From: Salpingoeca rosetta
Taxonomy: Eukaryota > Protista > Choanoflagellata
DNA length: 64,000 nt
Reading direction: 5' to 3'
Assembly: GCA_033442325.1 (NCBI GenBank)
Contig: JAWQFM010000010.1
Location: 230,930 to 294,929, forward strand
Shown here in pieces: positions 30,712 through 39,010 of the stretch. The translations under genes were made by a program, and so were the position numbers. The notes under the pieces are model-generated. The model had not been told where the DNA came from. It ran no database searches and saw nothing but the letters and a program-made list of their open reading frames with translations. How positions within the stretch are numbered: the first letter of the stretch is position 1; each line of letters opens with the position of its first letter.

Positions 30712-33700
30712 CTAGTACGGGCGGCCTGTGCGATAGAAGATTTCATGCCGGCTCTGCAAGCATGAGGTGATGGGTGGTTGATGTGTTGGTGGTGTTAGTG
30801 GTGTTGGTGGTGTTGGTGGTGTTGGTGGTGCCACAGGCCACGACCACAGCCAGGACGGGCAAACGAGCAATTGGCGTTATGTGAGGGTGAGAGGGAGACA
30901 GAGTGATGATGGCACTGATGACTCACACATGTACAAACACACATTCACGCACGTGGACTCATACGCATACACATGCATCCACACATCCACACACACATGC
31001 ATCCACACACACACAGGTGGACTCATACATACACACAAAACACACATTCACACACAGCCACATACCGGGCAGTAAATCTCGACCATGTCAGGAACAACGG
31101 CACGCGTCGTGGTTGTGTTCTGGTTGTTGGCGTTGATATTGATGTTGTTGTGCAGACTGGGGTTGTGCCCGATCCTGCGACGAAACGGCAGGGACACGTG
31201 CATGGGCGATTCAATCCGTGGCTTGTCTGTCAACCTCGCCGCCCTGCGTTTGCGGTATGCGTCTTTGTGGTGGTGATGATGGTGGCGGTGATACTCTTGT
31301 TGTTGTGACTGTGCCTGTTGGTGGCCGTGCACGTGTCCGTGCTGCTGGTGCTGGTGGTCGAGAATGAGGCGGCTGCTCTGGTGCTCGTCGTCGAGGTAAC
31401 CAACAAAGTGGTGATGAAGATGGTCCTTGGCGTGCCTCTTCTTGTGTTTCTTCTTGTGTTTCCTCTTGTGTCGCCTCTTTGCATTGGCGGGATACGAGTC
31501 AATCGCAGAGAGGTGCGCGAATACGCTCGTTCCGTACTGCGTCTCCGTTGGTATGCCCGCCGCTTGCTGCAGCTGCAGTTGTGGTGGCAGGTAGGTTGGC
31601 TCCTGCAGCTGGCCGTGGCGGTTTCTCCTTGCGTGCTCGCCATCGTCTCTCCTCTCGGTCGCCTGATGTGCCGCTGTTGAGATGTCATTGTGTTTGGAAG
31701 CGTCCGCGTCACCCCGGGTCACCTCTGGTAGCGCTGGCTGGGATTGCGAGTGCGACAGCTGAGTCTTCGTCGCCTTCGACACGCCATGCCTGTTCAGCTC
31801 CAAGTATCGATCATACAGGGATGCGCACTCCGTGTCGTCCTCTTCTTCGCCGTTCCCGCCCGTAGGTTTAAGTACCGCCTCAGTCCTCGTGTTGGTCTTC
31901 GTCATCCTCTCGTGCGCCTCGGCAGCTGCTTCCTTCGGCGTACCGTTGCTGTGCCCTTGTTTCTCCTCCTCCTCCCCTGCCCCTTTGCTGCTGTTTGCTC
32001 CTGGGACCGGTGCGTCGTTCTCACGCTTTGATCCTTTCCCTCCATCGCCATTTTCACCCCCACCAACGACTTCAGCTTCATCTCCTTGTGCCCGTGCTTT
32101 GTCCGCCTGCTCTTGCTCACCACCCTCCTTCGCGGGCTGTTGGTTCTGCTGCATGTGCTTGTCTGCCACGTCGTTGTTGAGGATGCTGGCGTTTGACTTG
32201 CTGTCGGACCCATCGATGTCACACGCCTCTTGGTAGACGGGCGAACGGGGCGACGATGTCTGCAGGAAGCCAAACGTGATGCTTGGCATCATGGATGGTG
32301 GCGACATCACCTCGTATCCTTGACTGTCCTTTCTGTGGTGCGTGCGCCGTTGTGGCGGGCGCACGTGTGGGCGGTGGTGACTGGGCTCTTTCGCCACCGC
32401 CATAGGAGGAGACATGGGGGCAACAGGGAAGAGTTGGTGTTGCGGGTGCGAGAGATGTGGTGATGAAGCGGCGTGCTGGTGTAGCGCGTCCATGCTTGTG
32501 ACTGTGGCTGTGGCTGTGGCTGCGGTGGTGCTGTTGTTGGCCTTGGCGGAATCTTGCGGGAGTGGGATGGCCATACGCGCGACCACGATACGAATGGAGA
32601 GGAGCGGGCATTCCTTGAGCGCGCGCTGCACCTCTGCATGCGTTGCGTATGTGACATCAATGTCCTCTGTCGCAGGCTGCTCGATGGCGTATTCCTTGCG
32701 CGGTTTCAGGCGCGGGATGATGAGGAGGCGGTCGTCTGTGCGCAGGTCTGCGACGGCAGCCGGGGAGTGGGGCTCTGTGTTCTGCACGTAGATGCCTGGC
32801 GCTGGCGCAACAGTGCGCATGTTGAGGCCCCATGGCTCGTGCACGTGTGTGCGGGTCAGGTGCACGGTGATCTGCGTGACGGGAGGCACGCCACGCAGAA
32901 GGAGGAGGTGGATCTTGTTTCCCGCCAACACCATGGCGTTGAGCACCTCTCGATAGGAGCAGTGCCGCACAGACCGCTCGTTGATGCGCAGCACAACCTC
33001 GTCCTCCCCGACCATCCTCTGTGAGTGTTTGCGAGTGTTGGTGTGTGTGTGTGTGTGTGCGTGTGCGTGAGTGTGAGTGTGTGTGTGAGTGAGTGAGTGT
33101 GTGTGTGTGTGTGAAGAGTGTAAGTGAGTGTGAAAGAAGAGAGAGTGTGTGTGAAGAGTGTGAGTGAGTGTGAGAGAAGAGTGTGTGAGAGATAGAGTGT
33201 GTGAGAAAGTGTGTGTTTGTGTGCGTGTGTGTATGTAGATGTGCACATGTGATTAGGTTTGTGGGTTTGTTAAATTATGGCATGCCGTGCGGTGCAGTTG
33301 GTTGCGTGTGGACACGCCACACCCTCCCACAACTAGGCCAATGCAAAACAAAAAGAGAATAGCGCGTGTCATGAAGAATCCCTTGACTGCCATGTACCTG
33401 ATCGGCTGGCACATCGTCGTTGTATTTGATTTGAATGCCATGCTGGCCCGTCTGGAACTTGAGCTGCGTTATGAACAGTGAAAAGATCACAACTGTCGTG
33501 AGGAGATGACGCGAGAATGATGCCTAGCTTGTCTTGTGCGCTTGTTTGTATGTGCATATGCGTTGCACACTCATGCTATTGTGGTTGTGTGTGGCGTGTT
33601 CGTGGTTGTGCGGGCGTGGTACCTTGAAGTTCCAGTCGGTGTGCCTGTGGAGGATGATTTCTCGGGTGGAGGGGAGCGTGTCCCGATCCACGCGCAGTCT

Positions 33701-34518
33701 CACGACAGACCCAGCCTTTTCCACGCACTTTTTGAACTTGCTTGGTGTCAACTTGAGCGTAGCTCGCCCGTTGATGGCCCTGATCCGATCTCCGGGCTAG
33801 TGGTGCATTGTGTGTGTGTGTGTGTGTTTGTGTGAGTGAGTGTTTGTGTGAGTGAGTGGGTGTGTGTGGTTGTGTGTGTTTGTGTGTTTGTGTGAGTGAG
33901 TGGGTGTGTGTGGTTGTGTGTGTTTGTGTGTTTGTGTGAGTGAGTGGGTGTGTGTGTTTGTGTGTGTGTGCGGCAAGAGAGATCAGCAAGCGAGGGTGAA
34001 GCGATGCGTTTTAGATCTACAGCCACTCAACGCATAGACACACACACACACACACACACACACACTGACTGCGATGCCGGCGCGGTGAGCGGGAGAGCAG
34101 TCGATGACTTCATGAACGAGAAATCCATCCGGGTGGATGCGCAGTGTGATCCCAAGCTCCTCGCCCTCCCTGTTTGCAACATGGCGTTGGTGACAGTCCA
34201 TGACGTACGTCCACAAAAGCCACCACGTTTGTTTCGTTCATGCATACATGCATCGATGTGGCAAGAAACAGCAGGTTCCAGAACACCCACCTGCACACAC
34301 ACACACACACACCTGCACACACACACACACAAGAGGAACAGCAGCAACTCGAGCAACAACAACAGCAGCAGTAGCAACTTCTGTCTGCTCTGTGCTTCCT
34401 GTTTGCTTTGATCCCCCTCTTCTCCCCTCCCCTTCCCCCCTCTCTGCCTCACGCACACATACCTTCGATGGATGACAGCCTCACGCACCCTCACTTCTTC
34501 TGGTGGTGACCCCATCAT
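30712..34518 (-). CDS. Multi-PDZ (probably three PDZ) scaffold protein with long low-complexity Tyr-containing tail
   Basis: PDZ1: EELGITLRIHPDGFLVHEVIDCSPAHRAGIA|PGDRIRAING...VRLRV. PDZ2 C-half: GEDEVVLRINERSVRHCSYREVLNAMVLAGNKIHLLL. PDZ3: EPWGLNMRTVAPAPGIYVQNTEPHSPAAVADLRTDDRLL...ATHAEVQRAL. Large exon ~31066-33018; putative last exon SRHEIFYRTGRPY* ends at 30712. The middle exon of PDZ2 is uncertain. Confidence 0.8.
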
Positions 34519-34592: not shown

Positions 34593-35029
34593 TCCCTTCT
34601 TCACGGCTTCGCGACAGCCGTGTACGCTCGGGCAATAAACTGAATTCAGTCGTATCAGTTGACAGATGGAAATCTTTCACCAATTGGCGTGGTTCGGAAA
34701 ATTAATCGGTGACTTCAACAAATTGTCTCGCGATATCTCCCCACCTGGTTGTGCTTGCAAGCAAACACACAAAACAAGCGAGCGAGCGAGCGTTGGCTGT
34801 TTTGTTTGTTTTGTTTTGTTTTGTTTTGTGCTTATGGCTTCTGGCTTGCTTGTTGCTGTTTGTTGTTGCTCGCCGCACACCATTTCCTCTCTTTGTTTGT
34901 TTGTTGTTGTTGTTGCCCCCCCCCCCACAAACTCTCAAACGCCCTTGCTCGACCGACCGTTCTCCCTCCGACCTCGCTTCCCTCCCCGCTTCCCTCCTCC
35001 TCTCCTCAACCAACCAACCAGCCATAGCC

Positions 35030-38000
35030 ATGACTGCTGTGGCTACGCTTTCCGCCACAGCCGTGCTTGCCACCACAGCTGCCATGCTCATGTGTTGCGC
35101 GTGGGTGCAGCCTGCGGCCGCGGCGCGCTTTGTGTGGCGTGGTTGTGACACCAACTGGAACCACAACCCCGACAACTGGCAAAACGGCGTCTCCCCTTCC
35201 ACGTCCTCGGACCCCATCACCACCGTGTTCTTCGGGCCCTCCACCGTCGAGGAGGAGGCCACCTGGAAGCCCGTGTCGTCGTTTGTGTCTGCAGGGTCGC
35301 TCGCCATGCACGAGCTTGTGCTGCCCTCGGACGGCATTTTGGAGCTGGATCCAGACGGCACGGAGCTTGTCTTCCTCGAGCGCGAGGACACCGTTGTGCC
35401 GGAGGCCAAGTTCATCGGCGGCCAGGGCTTCCGCGAGGAGTGCGACTTCAACTGCCACAAAAACTGGGAAACCATCGACGGCAGCGACGTGGACAGCCCG
35501 CCCTGCGCCGATGACATTGCCCAGTTTGACGGCAGCAGCAGCTACAAGCTCTTCGTGCGCGGCTTCACCCCCTTGGACACGCTCATCATGGGCGGCGCCC
35601 GCTTCGACAGCGACGACCAGCGCACCCTGCTTCCAGAGTACCAGTTCTCCCCAAACCCACGCGACCTCGAGGTCTTCTTCAAGTCGGGCGACCCCGTCGC
35701 CCTCACGCAGCGCTGCCAGGATGTTGGCCAGTACGACGCGTCCCGCGACGAGTGCGTGTGCTACTCCACATGCCCCGACGCCTCGCTGGGCCGTGACAAC
35801 AACGCGCAGATCCGCAGTGCCGGCAAGGCCCTGGCGGCAGAGAACCTGGCGGAGCTCACCGCAACAACCACCGTCCTCTTCCAGTACAAGTTCTCCTACA
35901 AGCTGCTCCTCAACACGCTGCCGCCGGACATTGTGGTGGATGCCTTTGACGAGGCGTTCACCCTCCCGGCCTCCGTCACGGGCATGGAGAACGCCATTGC
36001 CGACCTCATCACCGAGTCGTTTGGCGGCGCGGTGCAGGTGCAGGGCACCCTCACCAGGACGTCCACGCGCTTCACCTACATGGGCTCCGTCACGGGCCCC
36101 GCCATTGCCCTCAGCGGCCTCACGGCCTCGCACCTCGACAAGACCTTTGACACCACGTGGCCCTCCTCCGACCGCCTCTTTGCCCTGCACGCCTGGACAA
36201 CGGTAATGACCGAAGCCCTGCGTGGCCTCGAGCTCTCCTGCTCCATCGACCTGGCCGACGTCGAGACCACGTGCGCCAGCCAATTTGGCTCGGCCTGCTC
36301 CGATGTGGCCTACCTCCTGCACACCGCGCAGCCGGGCAGCGAGCTGGCCAACGCCCTCTCCGTCATGTCGCAGATCAGCGACTACCTCGTGTCCATCAAC
36401 CACGTCGTCACCACAACGACCACCGTCAGCACCACCACCACCACAACAACAACAGCGGCCACAACAACAACAACAACAACAACAACAACATCCACAACAG
36501 ATGCATCGACAACATCATCAGCCAACGTCAACGCAACAACAGCATCCGCAACAACCACGACCACATCAACCGCTGGTGCGCAGAGCACAACCACAACCAC
36601 AACCACGCCAGCCGACACCACGACCACCGCAGCCACCACGCCTCCGCCGTTTGTGCTGGACATGTCTGGCCTTGCGCTCATGTCAAACGTGGACGTGGAC
36701 GAGTTCCGCGCCACGGTGACCGCGTTTGCCCTGGGCTCCTTCGCCTCTGTGCCGCAGCCGTACCGCAACTCTGTGGTGGGCACGTACCTGCTGCAGGCTG
36801 TGCGCTGCCTGGATATTGATGCCGCCTCCTCTGACGCACAGGCCCTGTCAACCGTGGAGGAGCAGGAGCACACCATCAGCTTTGTTGTCGGCACGCTCCT
36901 GCCACAGTCAGACGTGTTTGCCATGTTCCAGAGCTGGAACTACGACCGCTTCACCAGCATGCTGTGCCAGCGCCTGAAGGGCCTCCCGCCACTGGAGGGC
37001 ATTGACTGCGACAACGTGCAGATTAGTCTGTACACATACGGGGACCAGCAGCAGGCCCAGAGCAACGCAGCGGCCCGCCGCCGCCGCTTCAACGCCATTG
37101 ACCTCCTGCGCATCACCATCACCTACACCATGCTGGTGGACGTCAGCCTGTGCGCCCCGGGCCGCGTGCATCCGAGCTGCCCGCTGGTCGAGACGCAGGA
37201 CGCCAACAGCCGCTACACGGAGCTCCTTGACTTCATCACCAGCCTCACCAGCGACTTTGAGGTGAAAACGGCGTCGTCGTGCGTGTCGCTGGAAGACGGC
37301 ATCCTGCCAAACTGCCTCGTCTCCACCATCTACCAGGACCTGTTTGACCAGCTGTGGCCAGACGGCACGCGCCCACGCGCTTCCACGCCGTCGCGTGGCT
37401 CGTGGCCAACCCTCATTGAGCAGCAGTTCTACTCGCTCATTGGCAACTGCGGCGTGCGCTGTGCCAGTGACGGCACCTCCTTCCTCACGACGCAGGACGA
37501 GGCCGACGCTGCCGCCACCCTCAACTCCGTCTCAAACCAGGTCATTGCCATGATTGACGCCTTCATCGCCTCCAGCACAACAACCACCACCACAACCACC
37601 AACGCAGGCGACACCACGACGACCACCAACGGCGGTGGCAACAGGGGCAGCGGCGCAGCGTCGACGGCATCGGTCCCTGTTGGTGCTGTGGGCGGTGCTG
37701 CTGGTGGCGCGGTGGTGCTCATTGCCGTGATTGTCCTCGTGGTCATCATGCGTCGTCGCGCGTCCAGCTCCGGCGGCGGCTCGGCCGGCAACAAGAAGCG
37801 GGGCGCCCTCAACGAGCGCCAGGTTGTCAGCTTTGAGAACCCCATGTACGACGACCCCATGCCCGTGCAGCAGGCCATCTACTCCGACGCTGGCGTGGGC
37901 GATGCCGAGGAGGAAGGCCTGTACGATGAGCCTGCCTTCGCCATGGGCCAGGACAAGAAGCAGAACCCGCTGTACCAGAGCTCGGAGGACCTGCTTGCTG

Positions 38001-38314
38001 ATGAGTACGACGACGTTGCCGGTGAGGGCGATGAGATGGGCGGTTACCTGGACGTGGCCCCAGATGATGCTCCTGGCGATAACGACGACGATGGCGATGA
38101 CGGTGACGATCTGGGTGCCAACGGAGGTTATGACAACGCCGCCAATCTCGGCGTCAAGGCAGAGAACGGGTATGGGTTTGAAGAAGGTGGCGACGGCAGT
38201 GGCGATGGCGATGGGAATGCGCAGGCCACGCCACCACAGCAGCCCGTGTACGACACGCCGGATGCCGATGTGCCCCAGCCAATCTACGGCACCATCGAAG
38301 ACGAGGACGAGTGA
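35030..38314 (+). CDS. Intronless type I membrane protein with amnionless-like N-terminal domain, Thr-rich mucin stretches, RRRR-containing SEA-like module and FxNPxY/Tyr-rich cytoplasmic tail (~1094 aa)
   Basis: Signal peptide from ATG 35030; FVWRGCDTNWNHNPDNWQNGVSP, LVLPSDGILEL, CHKNW, PPCADDIAQFDGSSSYKL resemble amnionless motifs; TM VGAVGGAAGGAVVLIAVIVLVVIM-RRR; tail SFENPMY, NPLY, LYDEP, GGYLDV, VYDTP, IYGT. Confidence refers to the CDS; the amnionless assignment is about 0.7. Confidence 0.9.
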   Translation: MTAVATLSATAVLATTAAMLMCCAWVQPAAAARFVWRGCDTNWNHNPDNWQNGVSPSTSSDPITTVFFGPSTVEEEATWKPVSSFVSAGSLAMHELVLPSDGILELDPDGTELVFLEREDTVVPEAKFIGGQGFREECDFNCHKNWETIDGSDVDSPPCADDIAQFDGSSSYKLFVRGFTPLDTLIMGGARFDSDDQRTLLPEYQFSPNPRDLEVFFKSGDPVALTQRCQDVGQYDASRDECVCYSTCPDASLGRDNNAQIRSAGKALAAENLAELTATTTVLFQYKFSYKLLLNTLPPDIVVDAFDEAFTLPASVTGMENAIADLITESFGGAVQVQGTLTRTSTRFTYMGSVTGPAIALSGLTASHLDKTFDTTWPSSDRLFALHAWTTVMTEALRGLELSCSIDLADVETTCASQFGSACSDVAYLLHTAQPGSELANALSVMSQISDYLVSINHVVTTTTTVSTTTTTTTTAATTTTTTTTTTSTTDASTTSSANVNATTASATTTTTSTAGAQSTTTTTTTPADTTTTAATTPPPFVLDMSGLALMSNVDVDEFRATVTAFALGSFASVPQPYRNSVVGTYLLQAVRCLDIDAASSDAQALSTVEEQEHTISFVVGTLLPQSDVFAMFQSWNYDRFTSMLCQRLKGLPPLEGIDCDNVQISLYTYGDQQQAQSNAAARRRRFNAIDLLRITITYTMLVDVSLCAPGRVHPSCPLVETQDANSRYTELLDFITSLTSDFEVKTASSCVSLEDGILPNCLVSTIYQDLFDQLWPDGTRPRASTPSRGSWPTLIEQQFYSLIGNCGVRCASDGTSFLTTQDEADAAATLNSVSNQVIAMIDAFIASSTTTTTTTTNAGDTTTTTNGGGNRGSGAASTASVPVGAVGGAAGGAVVLIAVIVLVVIMRRRASSSGGGSAGNKKRGALNERQVVSFENPMYDDPMPVQQAIYSDAGVGDAEEEGLYDEPAFAMGQDKKQNPLYQSSEDLLADEYDDVAGEGDEMGGYLDVAPDDAPGDNDDDGDDGDDLGANGGYDNAANLGVKAENGYGFEEGGDGSGDGDGNAQATPPQQPVYDTPDADVPQPIYGTIEDEDE

Positions 38315-38847
38315 TTGACGATTGGAGATTGCATGTGCGCGTGACTGGTGGCTTGATGGTGCACGGGCATTTCAACTGGGGCACTTCACTGCCTCACTGT
38401 TTCACTGCGCGCTTGTCCCCTGTGGCCACAACTCACACAACTCACCCATTTCTGTGTCTTGTCGCCTGCAAGCAAAAGCAAGCGCACTTTATTTCTTTCT
38501 GTTTGTTGTGCGGCGGTGCGTATTGCCTTGGCTGCTTGCTTATCATCACTGCTTGCGCATGGGCGTCGTTGTCATTCGCCCCCGTTTTTTCTTTTTCCGT
38601 GAGCACGCTGTGCTGTGTGCGTGCTGACCTTGTGTTCCCCTTCTGCCACTTCACTTGCGCATGCTCGTTGTTGTGGGCTGTGTGACATTCATTTCCGTTG
38701 CATTACACATGACAACATCAACAACATGAACAACAAAGAGCAAGACACACCACCAAAAGGGGAGGAGGACGCTCCCAACATGCAGAGAAAGGAGGTGAAG
38801 AGGGTGGAAGTAGGTGCACAGCAAACAGACAGCAACCTGGCCTTCAC

Positions 38848-38961
<114 letters not shown>

Positions 38962-39010
38962 ACACGAACACACACACACACACGCACATCTGCGTACGGC
39001 CGGGTGTTGG

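Follow-up and report, generated by a model that had tools for sequence, protein, structure and literature searches.

Based on profile and structural comparisons, we propose that a gene of the choanoflagellate Salpingoeca rosetta probably encodes a type I cell-surface glycoprotein whose outer 220 residues are related to the double beta-helix of amnionless (AMN), and for which an endocytic mechanism is set out below. AMN is the transmembrane subunit of cubam, the receptor by which the intestine takes up vitamin B12 and the kidney reabsorbs protein. The gene occupies 35030..38314 of the window, that is, the whole 64,000-nucleotide stretch analysed here (contig JAWQFM010000010.1 of assembly GCA_033442325.1, positions 230,930 to 294,929); all coordinates are those of the window, and all features of the gene lie on the + strand. 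An uninterrupted open reading frame (ORF) runs from 34709 to 38314 (+), in which the ATG at 35030 opens 1094 codons closed by a stop at 38312-38314, and the public gene model is identical. An earlier note, made from the DNA letters alone, had described an amnionless-like ectodomain in a 1094-residue protein of an apparently unicellular holozoan. The ORF is confirmed, the protein strings quoted there are all present in the sequence, and the guess at the organism was essentially right, S. rosetta being a colony-forming choanoflagellate.

The link to amnionless emerges from the family to which the window protein belongs. A phmmer search with residues 25-560 against 1.84 billion representatives returned 28 proteins, 27 of which share the N-terminal 245 residues. 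When these relatives were scanned singly against Pfam, 15 matched the Amnionless family PF14828 (profile length 442), seven of them above its gathering score of 30.4 bits (P0004 37.0, P0007 37.7, P0011 45.2, P0013 32.0, P0014 32.7, P0026 58.2 and P0027 31.7). Six of the seven align within positions 3-202 of the profile, its beta-helix part, while P0007 aligns just positions 9-51, at its own residues 126-171 and off the register of the N-terminal domain. A transitive connection is provided by P0004, which the window protein finds at E 1.8e-33 and which itself matches PF14828 at 37.0 bits. An alignment of the N-terminal domains (A2), headed by the window protein, was used as a profile against 177,635 PDB sequences; human AMN (6GJE_A) came top at E 1.9e-7 (34.1 bits), the match spanning profile 14-168 and chain 7-158, and the next hit stood at 0.073. 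The motifs NT.F....NW, L.LP.DG.L.L and PC..DD..F occur in the same order in both proteins, and the human AMN motifs that the earlier note had cited do appear, in that order, in the printed 6GJE_A alignment. In an ESM Atlas feature search the best cluster was 'Amnionless domain-containing protein' (0.90, 170 shared features). Two stray matches were set aside: a sub-threshold DUF7921 match of 13 residues at the CxC cluster, the one Pfam match of the window protein and its two N-terminal pieces, and a VPS9 match in the single-sequence PDB search (E 0.07), which is a chance hit.

Predicted structure leads to the same protein. An AlphaFold2 (AF2) model of residues 28-272, built with A2 as input, has a mean predicted local distance difference test score (pLDDT) of 92.3 and a predicted TM-score (pTM) of 0.86. 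Compared with the PDB by Foldseek, the model has 6GJE_A as its sole significant chain (E 2.2e-7, prob 1.00, TMq 0.57, 227 columns), and rank 2 falls to E 0.46. VIA-align, which is independent of Foldseek, ranks the same chain first among 48,161 representative chains, with Z 14.7 and a root-mean-square deviation of 3.2 Å over 171 residues; the next chain reaches Z 2.1. It pairs model residues 5-222 with AMN 20-223, and the match of the predicted structure takes in both AMN beta-helices. Searched by shape, the ESM Atlas yields a chordate 'Protein amnionless' cluster as its top match (TM 0.64), ahead of a second cluster at 0.33. As the profile match (E 1.9e-7), the Foldseek match (E 2.2e-7) and the VIA-align match (Z 14.7) each come without a near second match, the resemblance to AMN is far beyond chance. 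The comparison with the AMN beta-helix that the earlier note had proposed therefore has a single answer, 6GJE_A, and its reading of an amnionless-like ectodomain is borne out by the family profile, the Pfam matches in relatives and the unique structural match.

The domain organization follows AMN closely at the N-terminus. In both proteins a signal peptide is followed by two stacked, three-faced right-handed beta-helices. The signal peptide of the window protein covers residues 1-31 (35030..35122), with a hydrophobic stretch at residues 3-26 and then AAAAR, and relatives start alike. The Amnionless-type domain, beta-helix 1 plus beta-helix 2, is placed at residues 32-249 (35123..35776) from the AF2 model, the structure matches and the profile; within it FVWRGC begins at residue 34 (35129) and SSSYKL at residue 169 (35534). 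Its family motifs are W..(N/D)TN(F/W)....NW, L.LP.DG.L.L, CDFxCHxNW and PPCxxD. The domain ends in a conserved cysteine cluster, C229...C242-x-C244...C248-P (35714..35776), whose cysteines are kept in 23/24, 19/21, 21/21 and 19/21 rows of the respective A2 columns. This C...CxC...CP cluster at residues 229-249 may correspond to the cysteine-rich linker after beta-helix 2 of AMN, although the alignments to AMN end at about AMN residue 223. Over its residues 20-357, AMN consists of the two beta-helices, followed by a cysteine-rich linker and a SEA domain (PMC6283879). Both proteins are single-pass type I, the window protein having one signal peptide (1-31) and one transmembrane segment (about 886-908), and both carry two xNPx[YF] signals in the tail, the first in an F-x-N-P context.

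There are also differences from AMN. The window protein has 1094 residues against the ~450 typical of PF14828, with ~600 extra ectodomain residues and two Thr-rich stalks between the beta-helices and the membrane. AMN has a SEA domain directly before its transmembrane helix (PMC6283879); no SEA domain adjoining the membrane is demonstrable in the window protein, where one may nonetheless be present. Its tail is longer and acidic, with the additional conserved motifs GLYDEPAF and GGYLDV, and alone it stays below the Pfam gathering score.

The tail is the most conserved part of the protein beyond the N-terminal domain. A transmembrane helix at residues 886-908 (37685..37753; hydropathy maximum 2.85) is followed by RRR and by an acidic cytoplasmic tail of 186 residues (909-1094; 37754..38311). 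Four motifs stand out in it: FENPMY at residues 935-940 (37832-37849), GLYDEPAF at 963-970 (37916-37939), QNPLY at 978-982 (37961-37975) and GGYLDV at 1004-1009 (38039-38056); the further tyrosines PVYDTP and PIYGTI are also present. FxNPx[YF] motifs are internalisation signals of AMN, according to the earlier note, and of LDL-receptor-family proteins, and the tail holds two signals of the FxNPxF type in which Tyr replaces the final Phe. SFENPMY, starting at residue 934 (37829), and NPLY, at residue 979 (37964), are the tail motifs that the earlier note had singled out, and NPxY motifs are conserved in the family. In the long-form relatives the order is VV(A/S)FENPxYD ... GLYDEPAF ... NPxY(Q/D)S ... 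GGYLDV. Thirteen tails retain FENPxY and GYLDV; GLYDEPA recurs in 12, and two further tails have M/I variants of it. P0018 and P0023 are without the second NPxY. Sponge tails read F.NPLY and that of Choanoeca perplexa FNNPIF, and the C-terminal part of PF14828 weakly matches the tails of P0003, P0005 and P0023 (E 3e-4 to 2e-3). GLYDEPAF and GGYLDV, near-invariant in the long-form choanoflagellate relatives, resemble SH2 (YDxP) and YxxPhi sites. The resemblance suggests phosphotyrosine docking besides NPxY-driven uptake, and motifs of the YDEP and YLDV type could, from their sequence, be SH2 or AP-2 sites.

A similar arrangement is known from LDLR and megalin/LRP2, type I receptors whose FxNPxY tail signals are read by adaptors with a phosphotyrosine-binding (PTB) domain. 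Megalin is commonly described as cooperating with cubam in animals. The window protein differs in having no LDL-A, EGF or YWTD domain by Pfam, and the likeness to the LDL-receptor family, confined to short linear motifs, is one of functional analogy only.

The relatives of named origin belong to S. rosetta (a second gene, PTSG_07871), Monosiga brevicollis, Hartaetosiga balthica, Choanoeca perplexa, C. flexa, Mylnosiga fluctuans and the sponge Oscarella lobularis, and the remainder are metagenome or metatranscriptome contigs (JGI/IMG, ENA, Logan, TARA). Among the phmmer relatives with a recorded organism there was no filasterean, ichthyosporean, fungus or other eukaryote, a distribution that suggests an origin near the choanoflagellate-animal ancestor. 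The key relatives are S. rosetta PTSG_07871 (P0003), M. brevicollis MONBRDRAFT_24720 (P0005), H. balthica P0004, Choanoeca perplexa P0027 and Oscarella lobularis XP_065836307 (P0026). The choanoflagellate and sponge proteins share the N-terminal domain with the window protein at E 1e-11 to 1e-36, and the long forms resemble it also in the second ectodomain region and in the tail cassette; every database record seen is named 'hypothetical' or 'uncharacterized'. Identity to the proteins of named species is 25-35%, and only an unattributed TARA fragment, P0002, reaches 56%. Short-form relatives (357-465 residues) differ in being without the extra ectodomain and are more like animal AMN. In a domain tree of 20 rows the deep nodes are not resolved and branches are long; the two S. 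rosetta genes each lie nearer to environmental relatives than to each other, which makes the window protein and PTSG_07871 old paralogues that did not arise by recent duplication. The family, with two or more members in S. rosetta, shares the AMN domain and the tail and is not a one-to-one copy of AMN, and the AMN anchor domain, the double beta-helix, predates animals.

Some details of individual relatives may be added. PTSG_07871 (S. rosetta GL832973.1, 10001-13102) and MONBRDRAFT_24720 (M. brevicollis CH991548.1, 10001-13439) carry introns, because neither locus translates straight to its protein; both have the domain order and tail cassette of the window protein and no precomputed Pfam family. 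A second Oscarella lobularis protein, P0038 (499 residues), matches PF14828, is named 'cadherin-related family member 5-like' and has FNNPLY and QNPIF in its tail; standing beside P0026, it indicates that sponges too have more than one AMN-domain gene.

How might such a receptor work? In our model the AMN-type domain would stand off the membrane on a lineage-specific ectodomain of ~600 residues and on two Thr-rich stalks that are probably O-glycosylated. The open hydrophobic end of beta-helix 1 would then dock a beta-strand-rich ligand or partner, much as AMN docks the cubilin trimer. In AMN the hydrophobic centre Met69, Leu71, Leu77, Leu79 and Phe85 docks the trimeric cubilin beta-helix (PMC6283879). 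In the profile alignment its counterparts are L96, L98, L104, L106 and F115, positions that are hydrophobic in 23-26 of 26 relatives, which is compatible with a retained docking face. The membrane-proximal F-x-N-P-x-Y signals would recruit PTB-domain clathrin adaptors, so that receptor and cargo would be internalised, and GLYDEPAF and GGYLDV could provide further sites for AP-2 or for phosphotyrosine docking. A broader evolutionary scenario is possible but somewhat short of probable: the AMN double beta-helix and the FxNPx[YF] tail may have formed a diversified family of large mucin-stalked receptors already in the choanoflagellate-animal ancestor, where a phagotrophic cell possibly used them to capture particles or nutrients. 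Animal cubam may then be the product of one such receptor, cut down to an anchor and joined with cubilin, and choanoflagellates may already have a docking partner that resembles cubilin.

What are the implications of an AMN-type receptor in a choanoflagellate? The structural study of AMN traces the cubam architecture only 'from insects to man' (PMC6283879). Choanoflagellates possess, and have expanded, both the double beta-helix and an endocytic tail, which would place the beginnings of the module before animal multicellularity. S. rosetta offers a genetically tractable unicellular system in which to ask what a receptor with such an open-ended beta-helix binds and whether its first role lay in feeding-related endocytosis. 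In addition, a domain assignment becomes available for 'hypothetical proteins' (the window gene, PTSG_07871 and MONBRDRAFT_24720) that Pfam leaves blank or below threshold.

Several observations weigh against this interpretation. The direct match to the Pfam Amnionless model that the earlier note had proposed as a check was not obtained: a scan of the protein and of two N-terminal pieces gave no PF14828 match even at E<=10, a failure that the family profile and the structural match outweigh. A single-sequence PDB search gave no real match either, and bilaterian AMNs are absent from the single-sequence phmmer matches. Word-index protein searches with the whole protein and region 25-540, with Oscarella P0026 and its region 13-243, and with alignment A3 returned only the query itself or one Oscarella paralogue. 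The case for homology is built on the family profile and on a structure that is predicted rather than solved, and as the tree is without bilaterian AMNs it does not distinguish AMN orthology from an older paralogous family. The hydrophobic residues of the docking face also build the helix core, so their conservation is no proof of a partner. No cubilin-like protein was identified, no search aimed at one having been made. The ~600 extra ectodomain residues have no AMN counterpart or recognisable fold. Phosphotyrosine signalling, abundant in choanoflagellates, makes use of NPxY and YxxP motifs too. Finally, evidence of expression is thin: of two RNA runs, one has a few reads in the sense orientation.

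The tail tyrosines bring up a different function, a stand-alone adhesion or phosphotyrosine-signalling receptor, which we consider somewhat unlikely. Here the AMN-type domain would bind prey, matrix or another cell directly, and the tail tyrosines (NPxY, YDEP, YLDV) would be phosphorylated and recruit PTB and SH2 proteins for signalling, not for cargo uptake. Four conserved tyrosine motifs together with the further tyrosines, all in an acidic context, fit this view, as do the classic status of YDEP-type and NPxY motifs as SH2 and PTB docking sites and the large tyrosine-kinase repertoires of choanoflagellates; the long mucin-like ectodomain also resembles adhesion or sensor proteins. However, the membrane-proximal FxNPx[YF] position is common to the sponge relatives, phosphorylation is nowhere indicated in this analysis, and roles in signalling and uptake are not exclusive.

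Conserved docking positions also raise the prospect of a true pre-animal cubam, as the earlier note had proposed. The protein would then be the membrane anchor of a trimeric, secreted partner akin to cubilin, docked through an intertwined beta-helix at the partner's N-terminus together with a coiled coil, and the pair would endocytose nutrients. An AMN-type beta-helix 1 with conserved hydrophobics that match the cubilin-docking centre, and conserved FxNPxY endocytic signals, argue for it; moreover, in animals neither AMN nor cubilin is folded and exported properly without the other (PMC6283879), a hint that a beta-helix with an open end requires a partner. We nevertheless find this doubtful, because the genes flanking the window gene, PTSG_07871 and the M. 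brevicollis relative include no candidate cubilin-like partner (the S. rosetta proteome was not searched for one), and a multi-membered family of proteins far larger than AMN suits diversified receptors better than a dedicated anchor. Nor does the literature searched link cubilin or amnionless to choanoflagellates: sources including the supplements of Richter et al. 2018 contain no amnionless or PF14828 together with choanoflagellates, mention cubilin alongside them only in passing (two papers) and offer nothing relevant on early animals, although automatic annotations of some choanoflagellate proteins as Amnionless may already exist.

A chance or convergent likeness, with a generic right-handed beta-helix of the G8, pectate-lyase or autotransporter type merely looking like AMN, is very unlikely: the protein alone does fail the Pfam Amnionless model, and a G8 cluster appears at rank 27 (0.78) of the ESM feature search, but AMN is the only A2 profile match below E 0.05, seven relatives pass the curated Pfam cut-off, there is no Pfam G8 match, no other beta-helix chain exceeds Z 2.1 in VIA-align or falls below E 0.46 in Foldseek, and the better match to G8 or autotransporter-like repeats that the earlier note had envisaged as counter-evidence was not found.

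The preferred reading, an endocytic receptor with an AMN-type outer domain, leaves a long ectodomain between that domain and the membrane. Its middle part (residues 250-455; 35777..36394) is predicted to form helices and beta-alpha-beta-beta units, with AF2 block pLDDT means of ~35-77, and has no significant fold match, no Pfam match and no ESM-feature match. A Thr-rich, mucin-like linker follows at residues 459-540 (36404..36649), recognised from its translation and composition and modelled as disorder, and a second, shorter Thr-rich linker adjoins the membrane at residues 848-866 (37571..37627). Between the two linkers lies the second ectodomain region (residues ~541-847; 36650..37570; block pLDDT means ~45-89). 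By local jackhmmer this region is kept in the long choanoflagellate forms P0003, P0004, P0005, P0007, P0014, P0015, P0017 and P0023, and P0018 and P0037 match it in part and less strongly (E about 1e-5). When residues 262-882 were folded with 13 relatives the pLDDT was 61; Foldseek gave no match under E 0.2, and the best VIA-align match, Z 7.1, is within the stated noise. ESM feature searches of the rest of the ectodomain came back blank. A beta-alpha-beta-beta-alpha module is predicted at ~609-747 with moderate confidence and matches just generic alpha+beta sandwiches at Z 5-6; the SEA domain 2e7v_A scores Z 5.2 against it, within noise, and there is no Pfam SEA match.

The polybasic stretch RRRR at residues 683-686 (37076..37087) is a candidate proprotein-convertase site at which the protein may be cleaved. 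It sits in a low-confidence loop between two strands (model residues 412-427, pLDDT < 50), and an RR(R)R-type cluster occurs at the same alignment position in 9/13 relatives. We speculate that the site could fall within a SEA- or Notch-HD-like module, by analogy with the furin S1 cleavage in the SEA-like HD of Notch. A pentaxin lead in the middle ectodomain is probably a chance match: P0022, a Branchiostoma protein with five pentaxin repeats, hit residues 329-425 at E 1.6e-5, and was rejected as one 100-residue match of 31% identity counted five times, the window protein having no Pfam pentaxin signal.

The gene model itself is simple. The exact protein is recorded on GL832963.1 (GCA_000188695.1), where its 1094 residues are encoded in one exon and carry no Pfam annotation. 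Contigs from public runs span 34932-36415 and 36502-38800, gap-free and free of joints except for artefacts of the Thr-codon repeats, a cover consistent with a single exon. In RNA sequencing (two 2026 runs) reads are sparse; those of run X23 lie along the ORF at up to ~3x. Their first mates map to the minus strand, the orientation that most stranded libraries give for a + strand RNA. The gene is thus probably transcribed, at a low level, in the samples of these runs. Peaks of read depth and apparent joints at 36494-36639 and 37516-37661 derive from Thr-codon repeats common to other genes. These ACC/ACA repeats (36404-36649 and 37571-37627) draw reads and contig ends of many genes, which gives false ~970-base joints and depth spikes, and they also interrupt transcript contigs.

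The neighbouring genes encode a kinesin, a PDZ protein, an unannotated protein of 571 residues and an FHA/BRCT protein, the PDZ-domain gene lying upstream on the minus strand. Long CA/TG microsatellites flank the gene at 31048-33246 (-), 33576-34500 and 38800-39000, with a CA repeat at 38852-38959, and appear as THTHTH or CVCVCV in lists of open reading frames.

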